A stretch of 64,000 nt of DNA from Botryllus schlosseri (GCA_051294905.1 CM119372.1:18972001-19036000); one strand, 5' to 3'; shown: positions 1-64,000, numbered from the stretch's first letter. The notes: generated from the sequence alone by a model not told the origin. Numbers and translations: made by a program.

Positions 1-456
1 ATTACTGGCAGCTATAGGTGTTTGTAAGGATAAGATGTGGGATCTCAGATTTATCACTTGTGAATTACAAAATGTTTCAAGTACGACCAACGCTTCTTGC
101 TTTTAAACTTCATCTTAATTGAATTTTTCAAAGTGGAAAACAGTTTTGAGGCACGTTTGCGCCATGTTTACGGGTGAAAGTTTCATAACGTGAACTGAAT
201 ATGTATTGTCGAAAGTGGCCATTTAAACTATGCGATGTCTCGACCAAATGTAAATACTATTTGTGATACTACTTCCTAGAGTAATTTTGATATCTTCATT
301 TTCTACTTTCACTTGAAGCAGTTTTGTTGTCTTGGAAATTGCTGCCTCTACTTGGAGTTAAGTAAAAATTTACATAACTTTTACTTTTACTTCAACACCA
401 ATAAATGTACAACCAAATGGTCCAGTATATTACACGGCTTATTTCCTGCGTTTTAG

Positions 457-5091
<4,635 letters not shown>

Positions 5092-5408
5092 TGATGCCGT
5101 TCACTTCTTTTCTCTCGCTTGTGTGTTCTTTTAGTCCCCCGTCTGTACCGGCGCACAAAATATTTCGTAGCGGCCGACCCCCCACCCCCAAATGCTTGAT
5201 TTTATTGTTTTATCTCCGTTTCTCTTATACTGCCTCGTTTCATTCTACTGTTGGTCGCGTTTCCAAATCGATTTGCTTCGCTCGTCATGAAATATTCGAT
5301 AGATCCGAGCGGCGTTTGGATACCGGGCCTCGGTTTGCACGTGTTGCGTTGGTGTTGTCTATGGTTACCTTGGGTCTGATTTGCGTGAATTGACCCGCCT
5401 GTTCTTTT

Positions 5409-43800: not shown

Positions 43801-46800
43801 GCATTCCTCGATCAAATTGTAAAACTTTGACTGACAGTGACAGTCAACTTCGAGACATCCTGTTGCATAATCATGGTGTTGTATCAGTAGTTTTTTTAGA
43901 TCTTATCTCGAGATATATCTGGAAAGTACAGGTCTAGTGGTGCTCTGTGGTTTAGGTGTGGTAAAACTTCTGAATACCTTGTACAAGTGACTGCTTCATT
44001 TGCAAGTCTGTCATTGAGATTTTGCGATATTAAGTTGTTCATTGTTAGTGAATCAAGATCAGTTGTTCTCAACGATTTTTCCTTCTGTGCCCCTTTTCAG
44101 AAACATTGGCCCCTATACTTTAAGGGCTCTACCAAAGAACCAAGGCACATGCATTGGCAAAAACATCTCTACTGGTATATCGTTGATTACTCTTAACAAA
44201 TAAAGGTCATATTGGGATTGAACTTGAGTGAAGCTGGAAGGTTTTGGTTGGCAAGTGGCTCATTTTTATATGCCAGTCTCTCACATATTTAAATGCATCT
44301 TAAAGAGTTGGTATAATTCTGGAGCCATTTACCATGAGTATTGTGTAGCTACTGTTAGCAACACGAAAAATCTATTATGAAATATGTAGGAGATTTGATC
44401 AGTTCTGATGCCATTACCTATTTTATTTGATGTTAGAAGGCAAGTGTAGCCTGTATTGCATATTTTACCCATGTAACTTGTAATTGGAGCCTGCAATCAT
44501 GGCCTTGATGTCCTGTCACTAGCTTCAACATTCAACTGTCCGATTTAAAGAATTCGTTCTTTATTGTAATACAATTTCAAGAACGTTATCTTCTTAACAT
44601 ATTTATTAAATACTTGAGCTAAATAAAGGTGTGTGTATACCACCCTTATTTGAAATAATCATTATTAACACACATTGATCCGTTGCTAGGTTAACACTTT
44701 ACTTTGGAATTGATGAAATCTTCTTGGTGCTCACTGTTCAGTCACGGGGTTTTGGTGCTCTGGGTGCTATAAAGGTTCAATACTGGTCATATTTATGAGG
44801 TTTTAAAAATTACTTCTGGGTAAGATTACAAAATAGCTGAACCTTTGGCTTTTCAAAATGTACACTGTGTTGTTCCCTATGTTTGAAACAGAATTCAAAA
44901 CGTTACTCAGTGTTCATCTAGTACACTCTGCTGCGCCGAGCCACCTTGCTATCATCATTGTAACATATGAAGTGCTCTTGTGTCCTATTCGTTGGACATG
45001 CGAATATCACACCGACATTTCACGTATTACTTCCTTCATGTATTCCAATTTGCATTTAGGACCCATCAACAAAGACTGGGATCCGTGCGAACAAAAAGTC
45101 GGTCTCTTTCAGCCGATTACCAAGTGAATCAACAATCCGAAATGCTGCTGATTGTGTGAACCTGATGCAAATGGGCCACCAATTCATCAAATTGAGATCG
45201 AACGCTAGGATATATAATAGATTCTACTGGTTCGATCTTGCGACAAAGTACGTATCAAGCAACTTCGCGTATTGTTATCCATACCTGAAATGTTGTGACT
45301 TAAATTTGCGTTCATAAATGCTTGATAATGTTTCGATCTAGGAAATATAGCTTTAGCTCAGGGGTTCATAACATGGGGATCATGGACGCCTTGGAGTCTG
45401 CGGACTAGCTCGGACTAAACTACACCATTAAAACTATATTGTCCACTTATAAAATCTGTCCTTATTTTTGATCCACCACACCAACCCTGCGGAGAGCGTC
45501 TCGTCTCGAAAAGAAAAGCCATAGACATTTGTATTTGAAGGCCAGTCCGCGAAATTTTTTTTTGTGTATTCAACGGCTTTCAATTCGTCCTTGACATGTA
45601 CAACAAATCGACAATTCAACCTCGAACTGGTCACACACTTTTATTCAAACGTACGGCTACAGATTAAACAATTGATACCAACTCACACAAGTTGGATCTC
45701 CGTCGTAGATGATTGGGAAATTTGGTGTGTCAAAAACCTGCACTGCACTCGTGAATTTGGAAAAATTTCAATTTGAAGACGCATTTTCCATTTGTTGATG
45801 TTTCTCATAATTGTACTAATTCTATTGTACTATGGTGTCTGGATATGGTTTGAAATCTATTATGTGACATTAGTATTGATCACTGACTGTTCATGTCCTG
45901 AAATACCCCTGGTTATAAGTCACATTCCCTCATTTTTTCAGCTCGTTAAAGTGGGAACCTTCAAAGAAAGACGCCGGGAAAGCAAAAATTGATATTTCTT
46001 CGATAAAAGCAGTAAGTGATATTTTTTAGGTAATTTCGAATCATTGCAGCTGGGTCCATGCGTCATTCGTAAGCATTGCGCCTCCAAAGTTGACTCATGA
46101 ATCATTTATTGCGTGCAGTGATTTGGCGCGATTACTTTCAAGGATTTTTTGCCCACTGGAGAATTGAATATTATAAGAAGAGTCTTATAGTTTCATGCAC
46201 ATTACCCAATAGCCTGGTTCATCAAGTCAGCTTCTGCTGTAAAGAGAAAGGATATCAATAATTTAGGTGGAGGTTTTGTAATGTCAAAATTTTTCAGTAT
46301 TTACTTCAATGGTAATCGTTCTTTGGCATTTCGTGTTATTGAATGGGCATTGTCAATTTCAACTTTAGTAGGTGTTTGCAATGATGTGCGTAGAGCATTG
46401 ACTATTTATCAAGCATTGGTTAGAACAACGACCCACTATGCCATGGCACGAGTGTTGTTTCAGGCCTTTGTTACTTTGATGGAGTTTTCCTGTGTCAAAA
46501 TTTTTTTTGTGTACATTTACTGAATGACTCTTGGGACCTGAGATTTTTTGATTTGCACCTCTGGCCTGTGTACATTTTACATATTTTGCTATTTGAGAGT
46601 TGCAAAAGTTCATATATATTGGTGTTGCCTCATAAATATTTAATTAACTTTGATATTGCAATATACTTCTTGCCATGGTGTTTTATTAGTTTCCAGTGTT
46701 ACCGTATGTTGTTTCTAGATCATCCCTAAATCATGCCTCGAATAAATGGCAAATATTAAGGTATTTTAGTAAATAATTTTTTAAATCGGTACGATGTTTA

Positions 46801-49800
46801 GGTTTATCCATGTAGTTCCTGTGTATTATGGATGAAATTTCAGTCCACATTTGAGACTTGTTTATAAACCTAAATTCCATACCATGAGCGTGCTGTGCAA
46901 TCTCTTTGAATTTCACGTTTTCTCAATTCAATAGCACTGCATTGTGATCACAATGGCTATTGTGGTACTGCTACATAGGCTCGACTGTAGTTACTTCTCT
47001 AGACAGAGAATGACCGATTATGTTAAGGTCACATTATATTCGTTTATAGCCCCCACACTATGATTCCTACTTTTGTCCAACTTGAATTGTTGGATTTGTT
47101 GTTATTCCATTTAAGATGAATTCTTTGAGATATTGTAACTCATTATTAGGTGTTGCATCTCACAATCGAGAACGGGCGCACTGCTAGTAACGGAATCGGT
47201 GCAAATATTTGGCCAGGCCTAGCCTCCGAATAAATAACTGGCAGAATAAATTTTGTTTTCAAAGCAATTTTTGATTCCAAATCTATTTATAGAGTCAATC
47301 TTAGCGTCCATTCAATTTTGTTGGATTACCAAATCTGCCAGACACTTATAAGCTTTGAAAGTGTCCGAATTCTTCGCCTTGTAGGGCATTCATTTCCATC
47401 ACCTGTAACATTCCGGCCCTTCATTCATCTTATCGATGTCAAATTTTCCTACTCACGGTTCGTGGTTGTTTGGATAAAGTCACTAAAAGTTTCAACTTCA
47501 CCGGATTGGATTGAGTGCAATCGATCAACAGTGCCTTATCTGTTATCGCCGTATCCTATATGCTTGGCGATCATGAGACATGTTCGGAATTGTTAGCTGA
47601 AATTTTCACTGGAAAACGGTGCTGACAATGCAATGTAGACTAGATTGATTACGTTGCTCTGGGCTGAATGTCATCCTACTATAATGCCACCTTTCTATCA
47701 TATTAGGATGATTAGAGAGGCAATACTGTAAATTGGCATGGTATTGCGGGACTGTGGGTGAAATCCATATCATGAAGGATTTCCCAATTCTCCTATCCTG
47801 CTATCCTGACAGTATCTCAATGTTCACCGTGACTTTATTTTCACCTATTTTTAACAGGTACGGCCGGGTAAAGTCACTGAATCGTTCGTAGCGTCGGAAA
47901 TTACTTCGCATTTTCATGACCAGCAGGCTTTCTCAATTATACACTCTGATTATAAGAATTTAGATTTAATTGCTGGTTCCGTGGACGAAGCCAATACCTG
48001 GATCGCAGGTAAGGAGCGTTTTGTGAAGTTCTGCTTTATTGTGGATGCGAATATTGAAATGATCGTAGTCATGACCCAGCTTGAGCGATTGTGCTAGGCC
48101 AACTTGAAAGCAATATCGGAATAACTGCATGCTCTACTTTGTGAATGGGAATTTGTCATTTGACACTGACAAGGTGCTTCTGAACAGACACAGAATAAAG
48201 AGATAATACCGTAATGCCGACATCAGTGTCCTATTATTATGTAAAGATACTTACTAACAGAGGGTGTCAAAGTAGTCAAGAAAGCTACTCAAGTAGAAGT
48301 AGAAGTAGCGACGTAAAAATCTACTCAAGTATGAGTAGAAGTACTTCTTCCATAAGCAACCTAAAACTACTTGAAGTAGAAGTTGAATTGACTGACACTA
48401 AAAGTACTCAAGTAAGTAAGTAGTTGTGAAAACGATCCTAATTTGTTGACATGGATTGTATAAAGATGCAAATTGAGCTATGCGAAAGGTGACGAGATTG
48501 ATTCACATTGATGCATACCAGCAGGTATCCAATTTTCGATAGCATAAGCATTCGTCCACATCATGGGATGAAAATGATAGGATTGATATGGAAATGCGAT
48601 ACTTATCCTGTTTTCTCGGACAGCCCGTTTTAGAAAATAGCATGGTATAGCGCCATCCCCCATATTATAAGGTCCGTAGTTTAGTTGAGAGGATACGGTG
48701 TAAACACTTTGAGAGATTAGTAAACGTTGATAAAAAATATGGTGGATCGTAAAAATGCTATATTGTGTAGCTTTATTTCCGGAAATTAAAGGCATTACTA
48801 CACTTGCTTTTATGCTTCAACATGTATGTTATCCAGACAAAAGAACTGATATAAATTATAACTCAAAGTATATGATACTGGGAATTGAAAATGAAACATA
48901 AATACTAGTTCTAAAAGTGGAACACGTTTGGTGGTATGCTGAAACAGCTCTAAAACTAACAAAAAATGTCAGAGTCCACTTTCCCAGGTTAGGAAGCGCC
49001 ATGGACATGCTAAATTACGATATGACAAGTAAATGCTGGATTGCGAAACATCAGTTTCAAACGTTATGATTAGCCATATATAGGCTACTGCGATAAATTA
49101 TTTCATATGGGCGAAGGGCGACAATGTGGTGTGAACTCAGGGATATCTAGATATCCCTGTGTGAACGGAATCACGCCAACCTGCTACTTGATACTTTCGT
49201 GAAATAATACTGGTAAAGCCGTATCCACTGCGCGCGAAGCGCGATGAAAATTCTAGGCTTCACTCAACTTTTATGGAAATTAAATGTTGGTACTCCGTGA
49301 AAACAGCCCCGAAATTCCTCAGGCTATCTTCCTGATTGGAAGATAGAACTACTTCTACTTGACAAACTGAAAATAGCGAAAAGTAAGTAAGTAGATCACA
49401 AAATATTATGAAGTAGAAGTAGAAGTAGCAAAAATCAGATCTACTTGAGTAAGTAACAGAAGTAGAGGAAAACTACTTCAGTACTTCGAAAAAGTAGAAG
49501 TACTTCGTTACTGACCACCTCTGCTTACTGAATACTATCATGCAAGTAGATTTAGAAGAGGTGATGAATTGTTATGAAATTCAATTCCTCATTTTTTCAA
49601 GCCGATTTAATATGACAGACCTAATTTGGCATAATTCATAATATCTGCTGCCTTGTGCAGAGAATCCCAAAGCATGATTTGAACCGCAATGGTCGCTAGC
49701 TTGCCAACTTGTGCTATCGCCTTTTCTGTATTGCAAGTCGTAATCTGTAAGGACGTTTTGTTGGAAGTTGTATCATACCCATGGCGCCAGTTTTTCAGCT

Positions 49801-52800
49801 TACATTGCAAGACGGTGAATCTGAAATTTTCATCGGATGTGTCATTGGTACCTATGAAATGTCATTGGTACCTATGAAATGGTGAAATCCTTTTACATTT
49901 TACTCAAACAGTGCCAGAGTGTTTTTGAGATACTGATGTCTTCGACATATAGTATGGCTTGTGGTTACATTGAAACATTTTAACCACTTCATGATGATGA
50001 ATTATTCAATAATTCACGACATAGTCACATGCATGCCGTTTGTATGGAACCATTCCTAGTACAGTGGTCTGTGTGCATATTGCAATGACATAGTAGTGGC
50101 TATTCTGAGTCTTTTCTAAAACAATTGGTGTTAAGTTATTTTGAATATTGAATTAAAAACTACATGCAGATGTGGTAGAATATATGTTTTTGAACTGCTA
50201 AGCTAATTTTCCGATCGGTCTTGCCAAGACTTGCAAACAGGGAGTAACCAACAACTTCCAAACAAAATATGCTTTATCAATTGTACTAAAATTCGGCTTA
50301 ACCACTGTATCATCAGGCCTTAGGTGTCTCATTGGAGGTCACGACCCAGAAGAACTCCAGACTAGACCGGACACAAGAGATGTTTGGCTCAGCTCCGTGT
50401 TTGAATCGGCAGATGCTAATGGCGATGGGTATCTGGACGAAGAGGAATCGTTAGCATTGCTCAAAGTGAGTTTAGTTGAGACTACTGTGAGGTTGCTGCT
50501 ATGTCACTTTGGTGCTGATGTTTGGACTATGCACGTAGCGTGATATGCTCGGTACGTCTAACAGCAACAGTTGTGGTTCTGTGATTGTCTTTCATTTTGA
50601 ATACCTCCTTTTGTTAGAAATGCCCCACTTTGATGTGCACTTGATCTTGTCACAGGCACTTGGTTATAGGGTGAGCTGAATATCGCTTTTAGTTTGCGTG
50701 AATATGAAATTGACTGTGGCGGTATGTTGGTATCCATTTTTTGCTGTGTCATTATGCTTCGCGGCATGCTTTAGAGACGTAACAGAGTTGTTGATCTATT
50801 GTGTGGTTGCTGATGCACACTGATCTCAAGTATTCAAATCAAAGCGTATCCGGGTAACGGGATGCATGTGGCATCAATGCTTTGAGCTGTGGCGTTCTTT
50901 GCAGTTGCTGTCTGCTTGGCAAGAATTTTTATAGTTAATTTTTCATTGTAATTCCGCTATCCCAACCTATTTTGTTACCATGGGCAGACATATGTGATAT
51001 TTCAACTAGTATGATAATATTAGAAATTAATCGAGATGGAGGGGGCTAGTGAGTGCCACGTATCTTTTTTTATGCAGCACTGCAACAGTCCCACAGTTGT
51101 GGTAGACTCCCTCTAATTTCTATTCAGTCGTATTTAAACACAATGTTCGCCATCTCGTGCTGCATCACTTGTATGTAATTTTTCCATTTAATTAATCAAA
51201 AATGTGATTGCCAAATCTATTTGTCGGAATGCGTGTAGAGAGAAGTTGGGTAATACTATATAAGCCTCCTGATCTCGCGAACCCCCCGGGTATAATTGTG
51301 ACAGGCACTTGAATATTTTTGTTTTTAATCCCAAGTTTTGAAATATCTAAAATACCTTCAATCGCCCGGGCGAGAATTGATAAGTCACCTTCCGGTGCTT
51401 CTAAACTGCACGAGTCATTAGCTCGGTATCAATTATGTGCATTCGAGTCGCACATCAAGCTGAAGTAAAATCACTGGGTGGGATAGCTGGTGTTTTAAGT
51501 GGCTTGTGTTGTGGTTGACTTCATTGTTTTGTGATATCTGATCATGAATAGTGCATTTTATCATAAGAGTAGTTTACTTGTTGGTTTCCAATGTATTGGC
51601 TGCATTGTGGGGATTGATCATGATTCGTTCAGTGGATCAATTGTTCACCGTCAGGTCCGAGACCCAAGTCGCTGGAATCTGTTTGCAGTGAAATATTACA
51701 CTTGTATTATTTATTTATAATCATATGTATCAACGAAGCACAGATATTACATGACGGTGTTTTGTTCAATGTTCGTTCTTGGCTTTACTTCTTGACAACT
51801 ATCTGACAACATCTTGATCTTGACCATTTTGGAAAGAATTCGAAACCTCTTACCCTTACAGTCTAACAACACCCACTATGCAGTAGGATTAGAGTCAAAT
51901 TGCTTAAATCAGGTAATATCAGTCACGCTGCTGTTTTCAGAGTCTGAGCGATGGCATTCGGGAAACGAGAATAAAGCAGAAGCTCACCGAGTTTTTAAGA
52001 TTCAAGGATCGCGACAGAACCCGACTGACCAAAGACGAGTTTGTCGAATTGTTTAAGGTTTGTAAATTATGCGCGATTCTCACACACAAATAGAGTTGAG
52101 CACTTCAAGCTCTCCTGCAACTGTTATTACACGGATGCGGTGATAAATTCGTGGAAGAACGTGCAAAAAACATAACCGACAAAGTAGTATTTTTTAGTTA
52201 TACGCCTAATGGCGACGTAATCGAATCATTGACTGTTAATTCAATGGCAATTTTGACGGAACCACCATTAAAACGCACCACTTAGTAACATAACGAGATT
52301 GACAAATGCACGATATGTTCCCTTGATGGTAGGTTTACGACATTACGGTGTGGAATGCCTCGATCATATGGATAAATTGTGCCTCGCTGCGTATTGGGCG
52401 AGATGCCGCGATCTTGTATTGACCCAGGGCTTACCGTGTGTTTTGATTGAGTTGTTGGCAAAATATTTTCCGTCTGATTTGCTGCACTTTGTATGCAGTT
52501 AGTATGGATGGATAGTCTGTTGCTAATGGAATTTCACTGTAGACTAGGCCGTGACTAGGCCTACTCAATCTAATATGCTATCTGTAGACGGATATAGAAT
52601 GCTTGTACCGATGTCTGATGTGTTATACCAGTGTGTACATTGGAAAACACTTTGATTCGAGTTAATCCTGCAAGTTGCTGTACATGTACAAGTTTTCATA
52701 GCCTGACATCACTGTTGACATTTGTATCAAAGCAAAAATGCGTAGTAGATAGAAGATAGCCTATCAATCACAAAGATGACTCGTGTGCTGGGCAAAACGA

Positions 52801-55800
52801 GCATGAAAGTTTCCAAAGTAACGCGGAGTGTTACGCTCTACATAATTTTGTCCTTTTTATTGGTGACGAAAATGAAGGCGTCTGAATTTGTCTAATTTTT
52901 AGACCACGTTTAGAATTTGACTTCTTCCCCCCCCCCCCCGGTAGATGTGTTTCATTGTCATGAACCAGAAATTTGATGTTGGGTTCAAAATTTTATATAT
53001 ATTCTAGTAATCTCGTTTCTACGACGTTAGTAAGTACTTTGTACTGTTGTAACAGCGTTGAAGTAATTGAATCCTAGTAGGACACGGCAAATTTATTCTT
53101 GTTTCTGTGCCATGGCCAGTCACCTTGTCTTGATGCCGTTAAATTAATCGAAATTGTGTAGGTTACAAGTCTTACTCTTGCTCCCAATTAGATACAGCGC
53201 TCTTTGACGACGTCTTGGTAATGAGAACAACTATCGTCTAATTACCAGTTTTGTTCAGCAGTACTACAATTTATGTAGGCTCCTTGAATGTGAAGGCCTT
53301 GTAATTTGTTGTTACCTATACTGTTATGCACATGTTATAATAAGTTGCTACTGCTTGCGATCACCGAAACTGCTTTCCTTGTTTCGTGTGTTGCCTGGAA
53401 AATTTAGTGTCATGCAGGGTAATCAGGGAATATCCACTAAGCTACCTGCTCTATCCAAAGTGCAACTGCATTATATTTCTTCAATTCTAGGATGTCACCA
53501 CACGACCCGAGATATATTTCCTGCTCGCCCGCCATGCAAGCACAGATGATAGATTGTCTGTGGAGGATTTGATGCTATTTTTAGAGTCAGAACAAGGTAT
53601 GTGTTCTTTGATAACTTTTAATCCCTGCTACTATGAGCAGGGGATATTCGAGCATAAGTGTATAGTGTTAACTGCGTGTCATAATCGTCCTTCATTGCGC
53701 AATTACGGTGATTTTACGGGACAAATATCAGATTTATAATGATTTGAAATGACACTACCCAGTATATATGTCGCTGTGAATGTAAATATGATCGGTTAGG
53801 CTTTAGATGGATTACTTGGTAGAAAACTAGCAGATGAATTAGTATTTTGAGTTTATTGAAAAATACTATGTCAAAAAAGGCGATATGTGTTGTATGTAGT
53901 GAGTTGAAAGTTTAGAAATGATTATTGTGAGTTGCGACTGTTGCTCTTTGGATTACATTTCTACTGCTTGTAACTGCTTCACTCCTATGATCCCTCTAAG
54001 TCTGCACGCACTCACCAACTCGCGCGGTCCCTTGGACTACAGTGCTTAATGACTAAAAAAAGGTCATCACTTCACTTGAATTTTTCTGTGCGCAGAGACT
54101 GTGTCTCAGCACTGCGCAAGCAGCGCACAGGCGCAGCTTTGAGGGAACAATGCTTCACTCTCTCAAGAGTCCTAGAAGCTAGCTGATAGCTGTGTTTTTT
54201 TCACCGGTCTAAAACTTTACTGTGTAATCATTGCTAGTAACGCAGCTCAATTATTCAGCCAGTTCATACTTGCGCTGGTTTCTGTCATTTAATTGAATTC
54301 TTCTGGTAAATTTCCGCTTGTCACTATTGTTGTGTTGTACATATCAAGTTACATATCAACTCCATACATTATTCATGGTCGAATTTTGGTCTGGCGGCTA
54401 ATGGAAATGTGCTTTGGCTGTTCTATTGCACACTGTCAGTCGAAACCAACGGGCTTATCTGTTTTTTAAAAATCACCAGTCATGCAATTTTCTTATTATC
54501 TCGTCTTAATGCCCCCATAGTAACTAGCTCATCTGCATGTGAGGCTCAAGTTCATTTTGGAAATACGCTGCTTTCTAACAATTCGATAAATACGGTATTG
54601 ATTATACATTTCATAAGTACAAGTATCTCTTCCAGGATACTGGAGTTATGTCAAACAGTGTGCCTTCCAAGACGGTCATCTTCAGATTCTTCACACACAT
54701 ATTAGAGCAGGGGTTCTCAACCTGGGGGGCGTGGAACATCCAAAGGGGGGCGCGAAGAAGCGGTCACCTGAAAAAATTTTTCGCGCTTCGCGCGATTTAC
54801 CTCCAATGCACATGTGTTTCACCAAATGTAGACCCAATTTCATCTTTTTTATTGTCTCATCAACATTCATAACCTTTCACACCACCAGACAATCTCTTGA
54901 GGTTGCTAGCATGCCAGTGGGATTTTGTGATATAACGATAAGGGGGGGCGCAAAATTTTTCATCATCAAAAAGGGGGGCGTGTCTAAAAAAAGGTTGAGA
55001 ACCACTGTATTAGAGTAAATTAGTCTCCTCAAGTGTTTTTTTTTATTTAAGGATTGGGCTGTTTGTAATAATATTATCCTATACGTGACACAAAATTTTA
55101 GTCCAGTTACCCAGTGGTGTGCATATGACTGATTTTATCAATTAGTACTTAGAGTTTCAAATATGTCTCCAGGTTGTTATACTGCGCGGACAATCCGATG
55201 TCAGAAGGCAGTATGTCATTAATAGAGTTTGCATACAACGTAATAGTCTGGATTCAATGCTGTGAAAGTTATGTATAGCCAGATGGGATTCGTATCTTAA
55301 ATCACTTTTACCAGTGAGTTTAGAATATTTCATGGTGCTATGCAGCTATAATGCAAATCATTGACTGTACATGTGCTATCAAGGGGTCATGTCCTTACCA
55401 TGAGAGTGGCTTTGCTGCGCTTCAAAATATTGCAAATTGATGAGAATTGCCATTTGTTTCAATTGTAAAATCGTAACCTCTTTCCTTGCAAATGATATGC
55501 TATCTGAATAATTAATAGATTTGTCCGTGATGTCTGAAAGCTGAGTGAAATATCCTAGAAATCCATATCTTTCTCTTGATAAATAAATGGATTATGTTAT
55601 TGGCGCATTTTTTCGTAGCAAATTTGCGGATTGGAGATTCAGTCATACATAGGGCTATCTGCTAGTAATCTATTCATCGTCAATATTACAGTCATTCTCA
55701 ATGTAGGCCTAGCGGCCTAGGCCTTTCTGGTGAAGTAGTTTTCATCTGTCGATGCTCAGCAGGAGTGCATTGCATTATGGTTACTATTTGTGGTTTTTTC

Positions 55801-58800
55801 CTAAGTGCGAAAGTTTGTTTTGCACGTGGCTGGATCTTTTCAACTTCCGATCGAAACACAAGAAAAGATGGGGTAGTTTGAAAAAGTAATTTGGCACCCA
55901 GCAAGTGACGCTGTGTGGTACCGCGTTCATGACTTTCCGGGCTCAAATTTCAAAATTGTTTACAAAGTTTTTTGGACGATTTTAACTTCCTTTCATGCTG
56001 TGACCTCCCATTTTTTTTAAAAACGTCGTCTGTTTTGAACCAATGTAACCACAAACGGATAGCAGCTGCCCACGTGCCCAGCTGTTACCCTGGCATGGAC
56101 CAAATGATGGCCTGCTATTACCTCGTGACTAAATGTGTTTTACAATACTGTATGTTCTGTATTTGAAGGTGTGACGGACATTACCAGGGAAAGGTGCGTT
56201 GAACTGATCGAACAATTTGAGCCCTCCGTCGAGTTGAAGGACGTGCCCGCGTTTGGTATCGACGGCTTCACAAAGTATCTCATGTCTCCAGAGTGCAACA
56301 TATTTAATCCTGTTCATTCCCAAGTGAGCTCCACTTACGTCTTTTAATCGATCGAATTTTGGTAAATTGCATTATCAGTGTGTAATTCACGTTTGCTTCG
56401 GCTTGCCAACACTTGAGAATCTTCACACTTTCGATGTTGACGCTCCAGCGATAATGGTATTTATGAATTTGCAAAGTATACATGTTGAAACCATGCAAGT
56501 GATGTGATTCAATATTTGCAGTCCGGTAATTATAAACTGATGTGAGACCAACGAGGAAACAATTGGATGTGTCCAAGCACATTACCCAGAAGCATATCAA
56601 TAGCATTAAGCTGTTGGTAATGGATGGGACCGTTCATAGAAGACATTCTGCCCGTAAATTCTACCTGACATTTTTAAGTGCGGTATATGTTTTTAAAATA
56701 AGTCAAGTTAATGTTGTTATTTTGAAACACGCCTTATAGCTTTGTCCCTGCAGCTCTAATTCATTCTAATTTTGTGTTTCACTGCTGCCTAGAATCACTG
56801 TCAAATTTTGGATCGATCATTGGTCATTTGACTTATATATATGTCATAATTCAAAAGCATTTGTTGCGACAGTGTAAAATTCGCAATATTCCTTGTTTTA
56901 AATGACTAGGCGTGGTCTCACTTGTGACAAAACGGATGCAATTCCTGCTTTACAATGTATCAAAACATGACTCCCGTCATGATATTTCAAACACGGTTAT
57001 TACTGTATCAAAACAACATACCTCGCAAAGTCTGCGAATTGCCGAATATAGGCTCTCCGCGATCATGGGACAGTTGTATATTGCAGTGATTAGAGGCATA
57101 AATCTGTTCATTATAGTTCCATACGTCACCGTAACCGAGTTCACACAAGATTGAGTCACCGGCCAAGATTGATGTGAAATTCAGGTCTACATGGTTATCG
57201 AGATGGTTATAAAGTGAATTTGTGCCATGTAATTACCATATGTAGCACATCCTACAGTGATGTCATCTCTGTTGCGGCGTTCTTTACAATCTATGAAAAT
57301 GTCATTTAACCGTATCTGCCCTTACTATTTCAACAGCATATTTGTTACATTTATAGAAATGAGGTCGCTGAGTAATGCGGGTGGTACCATGGTCTTTATT
57401 GTTCATTCTAAAATATGTTATTTTCGTATACAATACATATCTGTAATGCCACACATATGATGGATACGATTTCAATTTTTCAAATTTGGTATAAGGGAAC
57501 ACTGAACGCTCTTCGTCTTCGCAGATTTTTTGACTTGACTGTTAAGCCGTGTAATTTGATATCCTGCACAACAATTATTCCAGCCCACGTGAAGGCACAA
57601 TTTGACAGGAGTTGAAAGTAAATGATATTCAATCACGGTTAGATCATTATCATAGCCTGGGTCATGGTCCCTTGTTGACTGTGGCTGGGTGTATTATTAA
57701 GCTGTACAAATTACTGGGGTGCTTCCAAACTGCCAGATGATAATTCTACTTATGGAGCTGGTAATATATGGGCATTGGGCATACATATTTCTTAAAATTG
57801 AAGTCTACCGTTATGTCAAAAGTGAATTAAGTTTGTGCGTATCGGGTACCAGTACTTTTTATTAGTGATCTTGCTGTTCACAGTGGAGTGTTGTCATGTT
57901 GTGGTCAATCACTAGTCATGGCTCATACTTAGCATGCCGGAAAAAATTAATTAGGCTCTAGTGCTCTTTATTCATACCTGGTCATAGTAGTAACTATAAA
58001 TGCCATTGACGAATCTTCATTAGCGTTTTATGGACTGGTTGCTTGAGGTGATTAGCCTTGTCCGTTGAAACAATCCTGGAATGTATTCCCTACACTTCAC
58101 GATTCAGTTCAAGTAATTACTGAAGTAATTTCCTATTTTCCTTCAATTGCTAGCGAATGTGGTCACGTCATGAGCTTGTTTAGCCTACGTGATATTCGAA
58201 AGCTTACGAATGCATTTGTATTGCGTAGGTGTGTCAAGATATGAGCCAACCTCTATCACACTACTTCATAGCCTCATCTCATAACACCTACCTCATGGAA
58301 GACCAGTTGTCCGGACCGAGTAACGTCAGTGCGTATATGCGTGCGCTGCTAAGGTGGTACTTTTGTGTGAAATTGTACACCGTGTTTCATGCCGAAATAT
58401 TTTTGTCAGATGTTGCCGATGTATTGAGTTGGACTGTTGGGACGGAGCAGAAGGGTCGCCCGTGATATCTCATGGTCACACGCAAACCAGCAGGTTTGTT
58501 GTTTAGCTGTTGCTTGTATTATACTATATCAGTGGTTCTCAATCCCTTTCGGACCGTCACGAACCCCCGCGGACCCCCAAAATTTTAATTCAAATTTAGC
58601 TCTATTATCGTGCAACCGTCATCTGTCCTGTGCGAATATCAACGTCAGCAACAAAATGACCATTCTTGAAACTAACATCATAGTCTACTATATTTATATG
58701 GAAATAGGGAAGGCTTTTGTTATTTCAAAGCGAATTCTGTAGAAAAATGTCATGAAATTTGCGGTAGAGCCTTGAAAATATGCGCCGTCTATTTGATATG

Positions 58801-61800
58801 AACGAGTGCCGAAAATAGATTTCCACAAAGATAGGTGGTGGCGGAATGCGCAACGCTTCCAACACTACCTTTGGATACGATCGCAACATATATGACAGTA
58901 ATGCCACCAAAATAGAGAAACAGATGTTTAGCGAACATATAACGTCTAGGTCCAGGTCATTTCCATCTAGCAGCTCGTCTTGAAGTTATTCTGGAAAGCT
59001 GTTATGCATATCACAGGAGAAAATGGATGTTTGCAAACAACTTTTTTCCAAAACCTCAACAAAACATGTCTAAACAATATGTTTGTATCAGTAGGCTATT
59101 GGCAATTTAACAATTAAAATGAATAATAATAATTCATCTCAGACGGCCATTCTGATTATGTGAGTTCTGAAGTTTTAGTAGTTATGAATCGAAACTGCCT
59201 TTTGATTTCTCTAATTCAAAAAATAAAATACGAACTATGTTACCAACCATTCTATAAATTTGGAGGTTTCACGGACCCCCTGGAAATGCTTCGCGAACCC
59301 CCGGTTGAGAACCAATGTACTATATCAAACATGTAGATACGCATGACCATTTTTCTTATAATAGGTGATAGGCTTACAGATAAAACTAGCTATATTTCTG
59401 ATGAGATGGAGATAGTAATTAGTAAGATGGTTTACAAGAAGTTGTGATTGAACAATTGTGGCATTTGTTTCGTAAAGTCACAATCGTTATTCTTACATAT
59501 ATTCTGTGTCGTGTAGGTGATTTTCTTCAACAAAATAGATAGAAATAAAACAGGGCAGACAAGTGCGAATAATATTGTGAATAATATTAAGTTGACAGTA
59601 AGATGCTAGAAGGAGACAACAATTTATTGTAATCAGTACACTATTAAAAAGAAAATTCTATGTCTATTGTCGCCGACATATTGGTAATTTGACAGAAAAG
59701 AGGTAAATAACAGTTTTGAAATGTCTATCTAAATAATCCTGGATAGACCGCTTCTAAAATGAACATTCTAACCACTAGGCTATCGCGGTTTTATGATCTG
59801 AGTGCAATGTTTCATTGAAATATCACATGTCTTGTGTGATAAAGACAATCGGTTCTTTTATAATGTAAACTTCATGATGAATAATTCTCAATATGTGATA
59901 CTTTACTTATAAGCTGCAGTATTAATCTGATCCTACCATGACATCTCCGTTATCTTCTCATGTTGTGACTCACCTCTGCAAGTGTGTTATATCCAATTCC
60001 AATTGCTTTTAATAGATTCTACATATGTTTTGTTATACGTATGTCCCACTACATCACAAGTAATGGTAGCTCTGGGAAAGCAAGAACATTGAATAGCCAC
60101 GTTAGTGTTATTGCCATGAGCATCATTGAAATACCATGGTAAGCACTTGTCTTTCGTGAGTATAACTGATGAGTCCCAATTCAAATTATGTGGTGGTACA
60201 AAATTCCTTTTTTATTCTGTCTCTGGTCTAAAAACCATTGCACAATGCACATTGATATCTCAAAGTGTTAGAAAGCGACTGTGTGGTGGATACTATCATT
60301 TACTAGTATGAGTGGTATATCTGTTTTGTCGTTCAAATTGGACCAAAGCCAGCGTATATTTTATAAGTGATTAACTAAACTCTCAACAGATCCCCGCAGA
60401 ACTTTTTTTAGTCGGGACCCCTAAAATCTTTTGGGTGATTGTGTGGACCCCTTATTTTTGCCTAGTCTAAGAAAGTAAGATGAAAATTGAAGAACAGCCA
60501 AACCCCGAAATTTTACAAGCACTTCCGCCCACTCCTAACCGCATCCTCATATTGCCATCTGGTATAGTTGATGCCTAAAAAGCTACCTGATGACTAAATA
60601 GGTCATTATTTTGAGCACTGTCAATACCGGTATAGTTTTATAGTTGTAGTTTCAACATTGGCCTTCCATGGACCCCCTAAAACTAGTCTGCACATCCCAA
60701 GTCCTGCCATGTAAGATATGTGTTTGATTTTTTTGATGTGGGTGATGGGTTCATAGAAACCCAGATGCTACTTCCGTGGGCGGCTTACCAAAATCCGACT
60801 TGAAAACCAAGTCTTCTCACTTATTCCTCAATTCTCAGTGTAAGCTTCGAACACACGATCGAAGCGATCAAAGAGTGCAGTTTCAAGAACTCGCCATATC
60901 CTGTCATTCTCTGTATCGAAAACCACTGTTCTATCGAACAACAAAAGAAGATGGCGTCCGTCTTAATGACACTACTGGGCGATCAGATCTACGTTACGGT
61001 ATTGATACGGTTCGAGCTCGAAAGTAACTTACTTACGCGGTCATTTTGTGTTTAGAATCCGGACGAGGCGGCTGAATATCTCCCGTCTCCTGACGATTTG
61101 AAGTACAAGTTTCTGATACGGGGGAAGAAGTTACCCTCGGACATTGAAGGGGACGAGGGGTGGGTTACAGATGAAGACGAAGGCGCAGAACTTGACGAAA
61201 AGGTACCATATATTTACGACGGCCATGTTGCCCAATCACTTGTTATTTTGCTGGTAAAACCGGATGGGAGGGGTCGATAGTTACGAGTTTGGCAATTTTG
61301 ATTTCAAAACAGCACTGCTAGACTGAGTGGTGGCTGAAACCTTATTTAGTTGTTTCGTTTTGAAGTAATAAAGCGTATCGAGAATTTCTCGTGAATGTGT
61401 CAGATCATAGTGTCCTAGATGGTGTGGACACAAGCAAATCTCACGGCTCAGTGAAATCGGTCTACGTCACACTTTCCATTTGGCTGAAGGCAATTTGACG
61501 GTGTTTTTTTGACCGGCTTGCTGATCGCGAAATTTGATAAAACTGGTATCAATCGAAAGCTACCGCGGTACTGTTTGCGAAAATATTAATTTTACTCTGC
61601 TCGTGGCCCTGGAACCCCCCGCAATCAGCCTCAAATGTTGCATTGTTTCGGAGTTTGATATTGTGACGCAACCGTGCGTCTGAACAGCTCAGGAGCAAGT
61701 GCGCGCGAGAGTGAGTGTGAATTCTCAATCGGTTGCCCAACAATGGCCAATACTCTTGCGGTTTGCGCTGCACCTCACTTGCTCCCAGACGGCATGGTTG

Positions 61801-64000
61801 CGTCACAATATCAAACTCCATTACAATGCAACATTCGAGGCAGATTTTGGGGCTTCCAGGACGACGAGCAGAATAAAAATTATACTTTAGCAATCAGTAC
61901 CGCTGTAGCTTTTGATCGATATCCGTTTTATCAAATTTCGCGCTCGGCAAGCCGGTCAAAAATTGCCGTCAAATTGCCTATTGCCAAATAGAACATGTGA
62001 CGCAGACCAATTTCACTGAGCCGTGAGATTTGCTTGTGTCCGCACCATATAGGACACTCTGGTCAGATGATTACATACTCTGTGATTACCGTATATTCTA
62101 GGTTATTTGTCATCTCTGATCCATATCAATTGCACTGTAGCAATGTAGCGAATTGATTGATTGTTCCGTAGTACCGCGAATGTAGTATATTCTGGCTGTC
62201 CGATCTAGGCTAAGTGATATCGTGCTTGGTAGCGACTAGGGCTTCTTTGTGGTTTCTTAAACTGTTGTTATTTTTATTTTGCACATCCATATTGCTATGA
62301 CATCATGACTAGTGATTCTCAATCTCGATTTTTCCGTCCCTGTTTATTGAAGCTCTATTGAGTGACTGACTGAATTTCTAGTCATTGTTGTTGGTTGAAA
62401 ATCTTAAAACAGCATTTCCTAACTGTGTCAGATTATCAGACTCTTTTGATATGGAGAGGACATTAGATCGCTGCACTAGACTTTTCTGCATGCCATAAGC
62501 GTGCTGTGGACATTAAAGTTAAAAACTGCTGTTTGAGAAACCATGTCATAAAACATCATCTATAATGTAATGTGTTGCAACAGGTTACAAGTTTCACACA
62601 GAAGGTAGGCAGTAGTTGGGTGTTCGAAAGTTAGCAATTACTTGTTTAATCGTCACAGATCGAGCCTGTGGTAGAATGTCATGTTGACGTGATAGACACC
62701 ACAATAATCGTTTCATATGCTGGATGTCATTAATTGCGTTACGGGAATTGTGGATGGAATAGGCATCAATATCGTTGATCGTGATCTGTTCATGCATGCT
62801 ATTGTGATTTGTTATTGTCCGGTAGCATATGTGTAGGTATTTACAATGGTGTGACAAGCTGCTGTGTTATTGCGCTAACACGTAGTCAATTTCAAGATAC
62901 GTAATTCTAGTGTGTAAGAATGGACTGCACAAATGCAATGTTCCCTAAAGGTCTGAAAATGACTGCGACATGTAAGCCTGAGTAAACGGATTAATTTGTA
63001 TGCAGAAGCATACAGCGAGTTTAATTGTGTTTTCAATGGACTCCTGAATTATGCAGCTGCTCCGCGCATAAATTTAATCGCACGTTGATCGTTTGAGACT
63101 TGAACAGATTTCTCGACAATGACACAATCAAGGTCTCCAACTGAAACTAGAACTTTTGTTAACATTATCAAAGCAGCGTTTGTTTAATTGTCTTGCCTAT
63201 TTCATGTGATCCTGAATGCTGTGAAATTGAACAACATTCATATGACATGTTCCGGTGTTCCATATGAGCAATATCTGATATATCAATGGATTTAAATAAG
63301 TCAACTGTCTTTGACCTTGCGAATTCCTGGTACGCGGATCACGACGCCCTGTGGCTGTTATGATGTATAATTTTCTTTTGTCCGATTTGTGCTACCAAAA
63401 TGTGCAATGTTCTATTCGACTCGCTTGATGTTGGATTTGGAGTAGTAGTACTGCTAATGTAGGTGTAGCATGCCAATTGCTCACTCAGTACACTCACATT
63501 GCAGATAAGTGGGCTGTGAATCCTTGCAATATTGGCACAGCAAGAAATTGCACCGAGATTGCATTTTATGCATCTTTTTATAGGCCTTGAAAATCTACCT
63601 ATGTTTTCCTGGCCTTAGGAAATTGATCATCAATCGAAAGATATCCAAATAATTGATTAAATCTCCCATGAATAATACACGATGTTAAACGAACGACCAA
63701 CTGCACTTGAGCTTTTATCAATTCTAGTTAATACGACCAGTTTTAATATTTCAATAAGCTATTGATGTGCCAAACACACACGCCATTGTAAATCCATCGA
63801 TCCGTGATCCGAACCCCTAATCCGAGTTCAAATTTCAGCCCGCAGCAATGGATTCTCCGCCGGACTTGGTCTGACACGAATTTATATTTCCTAGGTTTTA
63901 TCGCCTTCACCCGGCGGTACATTCTCGATAGGACCCGGCCTGTTGGTCACACCAAAAGAGGAGAGCGATGGGAAAGCAAGACGAAAGCTCGCGAAAGAGT
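25796..64000 (+). CDS. PLCL: Phospholipase C-like protein (PRIP/PLCL family), 3'-incomplete; exons 25796-25821, 27484-27619, 28446-28577, 45060-45247, 45942-46011, 47858-48008, 50317-50465, 51941-52057, 53491-53596, 56169-56323, 58229-58353, 58410-58493, 60839-60998, 61056-61202, 63895-64000+
   Basis: The spliced product reads RRRSIIK-DPS...[12 protein letters not shown]...[17 protein letters not shown]..(PH), [10 protein letters not shown] (EF-hand), [93 protein letters not shown] (X-box) and RKLAKE (Y-box start). This matches PLCL1/PLCL2 landmarks as I recall them. GT-AG and phase-consistent throughout. Confidence 0.9.
26900..27336. mobile_element. hAT MITE in a PLCL intron
   Basis: TIR tagggctgggca / tgcccagccctg; TSD GTCGGCAC / GTCAGCAC (7/8). 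Confidence 0.85.
27484..27619 (+). CDS. PLCL: PLCL N-terminal exon ([13 protein letters not shown]...VATQ)
   Basis: Polypyrimidine acceptor ttctttttttcag; phase-0 donors at 27620 (gtagaa) or 27626 (gtaagg); in-frame ATG at 27515. Confidence 0.6.
28030..28306. mobile_element. Degenerate MITE with gttcgcgttcac subterminal repeats
   Basis: cagggatggtgtgaa / ttcacactatcctta inverted termini; no TSD recognised. Confidence 0.55.
28446..28577 (+). CDS. PLCL: PLCL exon ending RRRSIIK
   Basis: Acceptor ttacag, donor gtatga; RRRSIIK|DPS reproduces the vertebrate PLCL1 RRSSIIK-DPS stretch. Confidence 0.85.
28983..29100. repeat. Copy of the aatgaacccgaatattttcggc family
   Basis: Inverted match to 34965-35127; related to 24790-25080. 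Confidence 0.6.
31343..31941. mobile_element. hAT MITE
   Basis: TIR caggggtgggcaaac / gtttgcccacccgtg; perfect TSD GTGTAGAT (31335-31342, 31942-31949). Confidence 0.88.
32067..32521. mobile_element. hAT MITE
   Basis: TIR caggggtcaccga / ttggcgacccttg; TSD CTGTACGC / CTGTAGGC (7/8). Confidence 0.82.
34965..35127. repeat. Copy of the aatgaacccgaatattttcggc family (inverted)
   Basis: Its reverse complement matches 28983-29100 and the ~24820-24930 segment. Confidence 0.6.
38321..38710 (+). repeat. AAGCTAAT(G/T)-based microrepeat array (left TIR)
   Basis: Directly visible mixed 8-11-nt units aagctaatga(aa), aagctaatt, aagctaagt, aaaagt. Confidence 0.95.
38913..40355 (+). CDS. MULE transposase ORF (480 codons; first ATG 39060), C-terminally truncated
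   Basis: GIDKTYN (D1, 39756), GTDDEIAL..A (D2, 39963), CVNH (CxxH, 40026-40037), PHGNS..YIRT N-terminal motif; no TNN-x-x-E catalytic Glu motif seen before the stop. Confidence 0.82.
   Translation: MSRLLWSWSWSFTPGNFLHFYSVAADIIVDFKTNILRKAAKIHRIFYDDMGAWTKTKQAYSYYLKTEDRLRYVYKPRCHRGAICTLKMKEYLPFSPQPSPGDVLMVGRYYAKSKNNPGYEKRISWIESGPSDPCNVCIVEYKGISGDCSPHGNSSVNFQNYIRTPPSTIEKIKEKVTYGTGKRVYVDLQNDSKSISQMPRNISQIHHTKHREKVSKEGHSSLSRDCYADELLDVINMMHTEKFVRRVIHYPAKASSIIVYTDDQITDLKKMCCTGKTVLGIDKTYNLGNVYATVAVFKNVKMISTRTQENPIFIGPIYLHHRSDRGTFNDFFSHLSSVIGGTFDHLVVGTDDEIALHSAIENSFKNCKHVLCVNHLKTNLVDKLQHGIGASKHLRKSLVNQVFNLLNSKDEIEFNRREEDLLTMCHSICPMLVTYLQNRLLPLLRKKVWQMRSFIGTMFNPKSAMCSGSKYNNFHSHWER
40570..41026 (-). repeat. 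Inverted microrepeat array (right TIR)
   Basis: ttagcttttca / ttagcttaa / ttagcttac units, the reverse complement of the left array. Confidence 0.95.
41439..42317 (+). CDS. Candidate alternative first exon of PLCL (293 aa acidic/Ser-Pro-rich N-terminus), or a nested single-exon ORF ending at 42449
   Basis: 336-codon open frame inside a PLCL intron; the donor gtcagt at 42318 is phase 0 and joins in frame to exon 45060. Confidence 0.6.
42640..44400 (-). pseudogene. Decayed L1/Tx1-like LINE RT fragment
   Basis: Minus-strand [12 protein letters not shown] (YADD-like, ~43560) followed ~550 nt later by [21 protein letters not shown] (GGL-x-x-P-like); many stops. Confidence 0.4.
45060..45247 (+). 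CDS. PLCL: PLCL exon: PP1-binding motif KKSVSF and PH domain start
   Basis: [62 protein letters not shown]; ttag / gtacgt. Confidence 0.92.
45942..46011 (+). CDS. PLCL: PLCL exon (PH domain)
   Basis: [23 protein letters not shown]; ttcag / gtaagt. Confidence 0.92.
46100..47600 (-). pseudogene. Possible further decayed L1/Tx1-like fragment
   Basis: Minus-strand [27 protein letters not shown] resembles the post-RT GGL-x-x-PN motif; weak. Confidence 0.25.
47858..48008 (+). CDS. PLCL: PLCL exon (PH domain)
   Basis: [37 protein letters not shown]; aacag / gtaagg. Confidence 0.92.
48258..49523. mobile_element. Non-autonomous hAT (1.27 kb), un-nested sibling of 6653-11936, opposite orientation
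   Basis: TIR cagagggtgtca / tgaccacctctg; TSD CTTACTAA / CTTACTGA (7/8); colinear with the non-nested parts of 6653-11936. Confidence 0.9.
49138..49159. mobile_element. 22-bp perfect palindrome CAGGGATATCTAGATATCCCTG, second copy
   Basis: Flanks TGTGAACT / TGTGAACG (7/8); the sibling hAT at ~7015-7030 shows the empty site. Confidence 0.78.
50317..50465 (+). CDS. PLCL: PLCL exon (PH end, EF-hand)
   Basis: [32 protein letters not shown]; catcag / gtgagt. Confidence 0.92.
51941..52057 (+). CDS. PLCL: PLCL exon (EF-hand region)
   Basis: [26 protein letters not shown]; ttttcag / gtttgt. Confidence 0.88.
53491..53596 (+). CDS. PLCL: PLCL exon (EF-hand region)
   Basis: [35 protein letters not shown]; ttctag / gtatgt. 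Confidence 0.92.
53985..54152. mobile_element. Short hAT-type MITE (168 bp)
   Basis: ctatgatccctc / gagggaacaatg termini; perfect TSD CTTCACTC (53977-53984, 54153-54160). Confidence 0.78.
54708..55007. mobile_element. hAT MITE (300 bp), family of 2347-2651
   Basis: TIR caggggttctcaacc / ggttgagaaccactg; perfect TSD TATTAGAG (54700-54707, 55008-55015). Confidence 0.92.
56169..56323 (+). CDS. PLCL: PLCL exon (EF-hand to X-box linker)
   Basis: [43 protein letters not shown]; gaag / gtgagc. Confidence 0.92.
58229..58353 (+). CDS. PLCL: PLCL exon (X-box start, SSHNTYL)
   Basis: [31 protein letters not shown]; cgtag / gtggta. Confidence 0.94.
58410..58493 (+). CDS. PLCL: PLCL exon (X-box, ELDCWDG...HGHT)
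   Basis: [27 protein letters not shown]; gtcag / gtttgt; preceding intron is 56 nt. Confidence 0.92.
58530..59317. mobile_element. hAT MITE just downstream of the catalytic-His exon
   Basis: TIR cagtggttctcaa / ttgagaaccaatg; perfect TSD TACTATAT (58522-58529, 59318-59325). Confidence 0.9.
60839..60998 (+). CDS. PLCL: PLCL exon (X-box, [11 protein letters not shown])
   Basis: [53 protein letters not shown]; tctcag / gtattg. Confidence 0.93.
61056..61202 (+). CDS. PLCL: PLCL exon (X-box end and acidic linker)
   Basis: [49 protein letters not shown]; tttag / gtacca. Confidence 0.93.
61406..62061. mobile_element. Short (656 bp) member of the CATAG foldback family (cf. 7081-9182)
   Basis: catagtgtcctagatggtgtggacacaagc / cttgtgtccgcaccatataggacactctg; perfect 7-bp TSD GTCAGAT (61399-61405, 62062-62068); diverged arms of roughly 280 bp. 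Confidence 0.9.
63895..64000 (+). CDS. PLCL: PLCL exon (X-Y linker into Y-box), cut by the window edge
   Basis: Acceptor tttcctag; [17 protein letters not shown] resembles the KL-x-KELSDLV Y-box entry. Confidence 0.75.

Follow-up and report, generated by a model that had tools for sequence, protein, structure and literature searches.

The stretch analysed here (hereafter the window) comprises 64,000 nucleotides of the 495.5-Mb genome of the sea squirt Botryllus schlosseri (C2:18972001-19036000) and carries a gene of the PLCL/PRIP family, the phospholipase C-like proteins whose vertebrate members lack catalytic activity. The gene retains all six residues of the phospholipase C (PLC) catalytic core. 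Judged from residue alignments and gene trees of the family, this intact set is the ancestral state of PLCL, and its retention is the rule outside the vertebrates. We are highly confident of the PLCL identity of the gene and of this ancestral-state reading taken together. To our knowledge, work on PRIP/PLCL has been confined to mammals and has treated it solely as a scaffold without enzymatic activity, with roles that concern GABA-A receptor trafficking, the protein phosphatases PP1 and PP2A, Akt, and the protection of phosphatidylinositol 4,5-bisphosphate (PIP2).

Active-site residues of the Botryllus gene

Residues are numbered throughout according to rat PLC-delta1, by means of HMMER alignments to PDB chain 1djg_A (chain index + 132), and the catalytic core is defined as His311, Asn312, Glu341, Asp343, His356, and Glu390. 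The segment between positions 58229 and 60998 of the window corresponds to exons 9-11 of our gene model, with AG/GT borders throughout and introns of 56 and 2345 bases. The three exons cover positions 1-36, 40-66, and 68-118 of the PI-PLC-X profile, a match far beyond chance. The original prediction had located six catalytic residues in this X-box, and when the sequence was read directly every one of their codons was exact (Table 1). Both members of the catalytic pair, His311 and His356, are thus present, as are all four Ca2+ ligands (Asn312, Glu341, Asp343, and Glu390). The unusual CCRC in place of the usual GCRC was likewise confirmed, and it is common to all four ascidians in our alignment.

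The remaining pocket residues lie in exon 12 and in exons beyond the window end, for which 40 kb of sequence 3’ of the window were added (the loci downstream of the window end are designated L002 to L005). Among the phosphate-binding residues, Lys438 is conservatively replaced by Arg, as in all four ascidians, while Lys440, Ser522, and Arg549 are kept. The Y-box, where Ser, Arg, and Tyr had been proposed for checking, therefore retains the first two, and the Tyr551 position is His. Written as a string of eleven positions (H311 N312 E341 D343 H356 E390 K438 K440 S522 R549 Y551), the residues are HNEDHE-R-K-S-R-H in the window gene, HNEDHERKSRY in the two Ciona species, and HNEDHERRSRY in Phallusia. 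In the hydrophobic ridge, Leu320 is kept, position 360 is Gln, and the residue is Ala at position 555, where the delta/eta outgroups vary too (Tyr, Gly, Ser, His). The full visible catalytic set of the original prediction holds for the six X-box residues; the set as a whole is incomplete at positions 438, 551, and 360.

Family membership and history of the catalytic core

A search with the exon encoding the C2 domain against 1.84 billion representatives gave the Ciona savignyi protein H2Z2T3 as its best match, with 70% identity. A search with that protein in turn listed three further ascidian entries (the Ciona intestinalis “inactive phospholipase C-like protein 2”, one from Phallusia mammillata, and another from Ciona savignyi), and the next matches were PLCLs of echinoderms, hemichordates, molluscs, nemerteans, an annelid, cnidarians, and vertebrates; the exon is 55-70% identical to PLCL C2 domains. 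The top short matches to this exon were rejected as additional tunicates, their sources being a mayfly, a snail, fish, and a lynx. Amphioxus, lamprey, gar, arthropod, leech, and nematode PLCLs, together with delta/eta outgroups, were added by cluster look-up, and the PLCL1 sequences of ray-finned fishes, sharks, lobe-finned fishes, and tetrapods were added by two further searches.

Maximum-likelihood trees were built by a quick search from alignments of 56 rows by 996 columns and 67 rows by 991 columns, with nine delta/eta/choanoflagellate rows as the outgroup. The PLCL sequences form a clade with a support of 100 that leaves the nine outgroup rows outside. The four ascidian rows form one clade (support 100) that is sister to vertebrate PLCL1+PLCL2 (97, or 98 without the eleven catalytic columns), in which the window gene branches outside Phallusia+Ciona; the ascidian stem branch is 0.54, indicating fast evolution. 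Just N-terminal of its PH domain, the window gene encodes the sequence KKSVSF. The corresponding block, KK[ST]VSF, is kept in PLCL from Nematostella to mammals and is missing from the delta/eta outgroup rows of the alignment; in PRIP-1, where it reads KKTVSF, it is known as the PP1-docking site, of the RVxF type. On the joint evidence of tree position and this motif, the window gene is a genuine pro-orthologue of vertebrate PLCL1/PLCL2, in agreement with the orthology first proposed for it.

The domain order PH, EF, X, Y, C2 is supported by Pfam matches to EF-hand, EF-hand_like, and PI-PLC-X, and by PI-PLC-Y at C2:19038491, the PH match of the window gene being weak and under the cut-off; its relatives carry PF16457, PF09279, PF00388, PF00387, and PF00168. 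With vertebrate PRIP-1/PLCL1 and PRIP-2/PLCL2 the window gene shares its clade, this domain order, the KK[ST]VSF block before the PH domain, and most of the pocket residues. It differs from them in keeping His356, which they lack, and Glu390, which is changed in part of the PLCL1 proteins, in having Arg438, His551, and CCRC (compared with GCRS/GCRC), and in being some 400 amino acids longer at its two ends. The nearest relatives are Ciona intestinalis P0154, Ciona savignyi H2Z2T3/5, and Phallusia mammillata A0A6F9DPG8, with 57% identity over the aligned core. They share with it CCRC, Arg438, His356, and a non-hydrophobic residue at position 360, and differ from it in having Tyr551. Their “inactive” name at NCBI was carried over from vertebrates, although the inactivating substitution is absent from them.

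The residue table, which holds 67 sequences, separates the vertebrates clearly from the remaining animals. The core is complete in 24 of the 33 non-vertebrate PLCL rows and in none of the 25 vertebrate rows, and His356 is absent from every one of the latter (25/25). The non-vertebrate rows with an intact core include all those of cnidarians (4/4), molluscs (5/5), echinoderms (5/5), hemichordates (3/3), and ascidians (4/4), together with Owenia, Tubulanus, and Toxocara. The core is lost in amphioxus (Asn312Asp, Asp343Val, Glu390Asp, and more), in four arthropods (Glu341Lys, with both histidines kept in three of them), in a leech, in Lineus, and in C. elegans PLL-1. The last of these belongs to the same PLCL clade and has lost His311, Asn312, His356, and Glu390; it has been described as sharing its His mutation with the mammalian proteins and is on that account presumed to be inactive (PMC2266627), and our alignment agrees with that report on the His loss.

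Within the vertebrates, the state of position 356 depends on the paralogue and the lineage. Jawed-vertebrate PLCL2 reads YTGHT, as stated in the original prediction (true in eight of the eight sequences aligned), and the change of His356 to Thr is its sole core change, with the other positions kept save for 551 (Tyr, Phe, or Cys). In lamprey PLCL2 the motif is FNGHT, with Asn at position 356. The PLCL1 proteins of lobe-finned fishes, most tetrapods, and most cartilaginous fishes also have Asn at this position, mostly together with a change of Glu390 to Gly (Arg in a shark and a ray; Gly in Callorhinchus). Platypus PLCL1 is much more decayed, and ray-finned-fish PLCL1 far more so, with His-rich insertions where the His356 loop was.

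Mapped on the gene tree, the core-intact state requires at least five changes. The core set was lost at least five times, a count that can be lowered by the long branches of several tree rows, the placement of amphioxus with ecdysozoans being probably an artefact. Besides the vertebrate stem, amphioxus, arthropods, nematodes, a leech, and a nemertean have lost it independently. According to the residue table and the trees, the loss of His356 in vertebrates postdates the tunicate-vertebrate split, and the comparison does help to date it, as had been proposed. Because the path from His through Asn to Thr consists of two single-base steps (CAY, AAY, ACY), we infer as the simplest reading that His356 changed to Asn once, on the vertebrate stem, and that Asn then became Thr in PLCL2. 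The Botryllus gene has its core in the ancestral state; such retention being usual in non-vertebrate PLCLs, the gene adds one more data point to the pattern and is no unique ancestor-like form.

Catalysis or binding by the X-Y pocket

If the retained residues are those of a working enzyme, the protein would dock PP1 through KKSVSF and bind PIP2 or inositol 1,4,5-trisphosphate (IP3) through its PH domain, in both respects like vertebrate PRIP, and its X-Y pocket would still hydrolyse PIP2 in a Ca2+-dependent manner, probably more weakly than delta-type enzymes because of His at position 551 and the polar residue at ridge position 360. For the family, this would mean that PLCL/PRIP began as a PIP2 phospholipase that was at the same time a PP1-docking scaffold and that it still plays both parts in the majority of animal phyla (cnidarians, molluscs, annelids, nemerteans, echinoderms, hemichordates, and ascidians), the inactive state being derived on the vertebrate stem and in at least four further independent origins. 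We give this account of the family an even chance of being correct. Orthologues in which all eleven pocket residues are present (oyster, sea star, Nematostella) probably hydrolyse PIP2, and on measurable hydrolysis by the window-gene protein itself our judgement is evenly divided.

Several observations weigh against PIP2 hydrolysis. The residue at position 551, which packs on the inositol ring as Tyr or Phe, is a feature of active PI-PLC that the window gene lacks; it is Tyr or Phe in the nine outgroup rows and in all but three of about 70 core-intact sequences. Ellis et al. 1998 are said to have found activity lowered by orders of magnitude when Ala takes the place of most PLC-delta1 active-site residues, Tyr551 included. 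At ridge position 360, nine of nine outgroup rows and 24 of the 29 other invertebrate PLCLs have Leu or Phe, the window gene has Gln, and the other ascidians have Pro. Tyr551His and the weakened ridge together make activity doubtful in the Botryllus schlosseri protein, even though Saccoglossus has independently acquired His at 551 with all else intact, which suggests that this residue can be tolerated. Beyond this species, retention of residues is in itself weak evidence of catalysis, because vertebrate PLCL2 has 10 of the 11 pocket residues although it is inactive, and because His356 is still there in amphioxus, three arthropods, and Lineus, all with other core losses. The X-Y domain of PRIP has moreover been reported to associate with PIP2 in spite of its inactivity (PMC6726632), and the pocket could therefore be conserved for binding alone. 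Enzymatic data for any non-vertebrate PLCL were not found in the literature searched.

The same observations are those expected of a protein that acts by binding only, a scaffold that would dock PP1 and sequester PIP2 and IP3, with the X-Y pocket holding the head group uncleaved and its residues kept for binding or for the fold. The 10 pocket residues of PLCL2 are found in all the jawed vertebrates sampled, and the changes Tyr551His and Lys438Arg of the window gene fit such an explanation, as does its polar ridge residue at position 360. However, a pocket kept for binding alone should let His311 and His356 drift, as His356 has done in vertebrates, C. elegans, the leech, and thrips, whereas all six core residues have stood together in 24 of the 33 non-vertebrate rows for more than half a billion years, and the ascidians have kept the core despite their fast evolution. 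We regard binding without cleavage as a serious possibility whose chance falls somewhat short of one half. Two further explanations can be set aside with much greater assurance. It is very improbable that we are dealing with a diverged paralogue of PLC-delta or PLC-eta, and thus with an ordinary active PLC. Rat PLC-delta1 (1DJG/1DJX family) is indeed the closest solved structure (E = 2.4e-130 with the Ciona orthologue), and the catalytic residues of the window gene resemble those of active PLC, with His311, Asn312, Glu341, Asp343, His356, Glu390, Lys440, Ser522, and Arg549 matched. The window gene nevertheless differs from it in Lys438Arg, Tyr551His, Phe360Gln, and Trp555Ala, and delta enzymes lack the PP1-type motif and the long terminal extensions and belong to a different clade. 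We rejected the paralogue identity on the tree position, which places the ascidian genes within the PLCL clade and beside the vertebrate ones, and on the clade-specific KK[ST]VSF motif; eight other PI-PLC-Y loci of the genome could supply the other isozymes.

There is similarly very little to recommend the idea that an assembly error has produced His551 or made the gene seem intact, or that the gene is decaying. A single C/T change does separate the CAT found here from TAT, and the three other ascidians have Tyr at this position. Among the variants listed, however, none falls on the His551 codon (L002:2527-2529) in contigs of runs X1, X5, and X15, which come from three studies (depths of about 10, 28, and 42), while the six variants listed in exon 15 are all synonymous (6/6). 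It thus seems that the substitution is genuine in this species, and purifying selection acts on the exon. Decay is contradicted by 4.6 kb of coding sequence with no internal stops or frameshifts, and by the presence of the spliced form in contigs.

As for what was known before, the retention of His in invertebrate PLCLs was undocumented in the open-access literature searched, which gives no proof of novelty. The only statement on the active site of an invertebrate PLCL found in that literature was the remark on PLL-1 (PMC2266627), and in a paper on a sea cucumber PLCL is simply listed by its “inactive” name. Ciona sequences with a retained core have been public for years under such names. As a gene, this is an ordinary addition to a known family, and what the pattern across the family offers is an evolutionary point that is modest and can be tested. 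Should non-vertebrate PLCLs prove to be active, the family would offer a clean and datable case of an enzyme turned pseudoenzyme with its scaffold role kept, several independent replicates of the loss, and living representatives of the state before it, including one among the vertebrates’ closest invertebrate relatives; the name “inactive” would then be wrong for hundreds of invertebrate genes, and a widespread annotation would be corrected. The window alone contributes a small gain, and Tyr551His makes its gene a poorer candidate for an assay than those of Ciona or of the species with all eleven residues.

Gene model, expression, and surrounding sequence

The exon model was built with the ascidian PLCL relatives as guides in tblastn and is compiled in Table 1. 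It comprises 20 exons encoding about 1536 amino acids, a length similar to those of the Ciona (1492) and Phallusia (1558) PLCLs, and runs from a start codon inferred at 41439 to a stop about 12 kb beyond the window end, with GT-AG borders at all introns. The less certain junctions are the choice of 53596 over 53602 and the pair 61202/63895 in the variable X-Y linker. In the numbering of the model, the catalytic His356 is His666 and the His at position 551 is His872. The predicted joints 79/1415, 1501/2511, 2623/3089, and 3174/4274 of L002, which connect exons 13-17, are matched exactly in Logan contigs from runs X15 and X5, which belong to different studies. The PLCL gene is therefore intact, transcribed, and spliced, with the proviso that the RNA label of both runs is a guess. 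Genome searches with the C2 exon and with the exon carrying the PP1 motif and the PH domain led each time to this locus only, and a second PLCL copy was thereby rejected.

Table 1. Exons of the Botryllus schlosseri PLCL gene and neighbouring genes and open frames. Coordinates are those of the window unless a downstream locus is named; residue names refer to equivalents of rat PLC-delta1.
Feature	Position	Strand	Evidence and remarks
Last exons of a cullin gene	400-5100	+	Pfam Cullin E = 1.4e-23 (980-1387); Cullin neddylation domain E = 1.4e-27 (4855-5088), which terminates the protein
Open frame of 484 amino acids	38901-40352	+	Weak MULE transposase match (E = 1e-4, under cut-off); just upstream of PLCL exon 1
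PLCL exon 1	41439..42311	+	Putative ATG, GT donor after 42311; long, poorly conserved N-terminal region; tblastn to Ciona/Phallusia PLCL N-termini
Exon 2	45060..45247	+	KKSVSF at 45093-45110, then start of PH domain; 66% identity to Ciona intestinalis PLCL
Exon 3, PH domain	45942..46011	+	tblastn to ascidian PLCLs; AG/GT borders
Exon 4, C-terminal half of PH	47858..48008	+	Weak Pfam PH_12 match; 56-58% identity to ascidian PLCLs (tblastn)
Exon 5, EF-hand	50317..50465	+	Pfam EF-hand_5 and EF-hand_1 (both under curated cut-off); tblastn
Exon 6, EF-hand region	51941..52057	+	54-65% identity to ascidian PLCLs (tblastn)
Exon 7, PLC EF-hand-like region	53491..53596	+	Weak Pfam EF-hand_like; tblastn; donor 53596 preferred to 53602 by alignment score alone
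Exon 8, PLC EF-hand-like domain	56169..56323	+	Pfam PF09279, E = 9.9e-09, above cut-off
Exon 9, start of X-box	58229..58353	+	Pfam PI-PLC-X E = 3.6e-14; His311/Asn312 = CAT AAC, 58280-58285
Exon 10, X-box with CCRC	58410..58493	+	PI-PLC-X E = 1.2e-09; Glu341 = GAG 58426-58428; Asp343 = GAC 58432-58434; His356 = CAT 58471-58473, within VISHGHT
Exon 11, X-box	60839..60998	+	PI-PLC-X E = 1.6e-16; Glu390 = GAA 60918-60920, within IENH; aligns with PLC-delta1 chain positions 237-279
Exon 12, end of X-box and acidic start of X-Y linker	61056..61202	+	Frame and alignment; reads LIRGKKL, with Lys438 to Arg (61119-61121) and Lys440 kept (61125-61127); donor 61202 picked by eye, alternative 61241
Exon 13, X-Y linker and start of Y-box	63895..64000, on to L002:79	+	Frame fits AG acceptor at 63895
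Exon 14	L002:1415-1501	+	TSMHE; Ser522 position = Ser
Exon 15	L002:2511-2623	+	LTRVHP; Arg549 kept; Tyr551 position = His (CAT)
Exons 16-20	L002:3089-3174; L002:4274-4601 (C2 domain); L002:7021-7448; L002:8888-9358; L003:1358-1945 (stop)	+	
Next downstream gene	L004-L005 (~27-40 kb past window end)	+	Large EGF/CUB-repeat gene with cubilin-like domain make-up; CUB E = 7.8e-15, EGF E = 7.1e-11

The eight other PI-PLC-Y loci of the genome include four in tandem on contig 11 (C11:28137014-28235707, minus strand), which have near-identical PI-PLC-Y scores, lie within 100 kb, and represent a local expansion of another PLC gene. Further single loci are found on C11, C15, C1, and C6. Over L002:2295-3344, 15 differences from the assembly in 1049 bases are seen in the X1 contig, the best DNA holder, pointing to high heterozygosity or to a different haplotype from that of the assembly.

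The PLCL intron between exons 14 and 15 contains a highly repeated element (L002:1600-2400), with contig depths of 10^4-10^5 in DNA runs; it is also abundant in the raw RNA reads of run X23, with many loose ends. In the part of that run that was read, about 6%, coverage was confined to this repeat and did not extend to the exons, and it has no bearing on expression. In the intron between exons 10 and 11, the region 58523-59313 has possible short terminal inverted repeats, CAGTGGTTCTCAA ... TTGAGAACCAATG, which were seen by eye and were not recovered as a pair by the repeat search. Its subterminal motifs are rich in GGACCCCC. These features suggest a transposon that is small and non-autonomous, and GGACCCC motifs like these are found again near 60380-60690.

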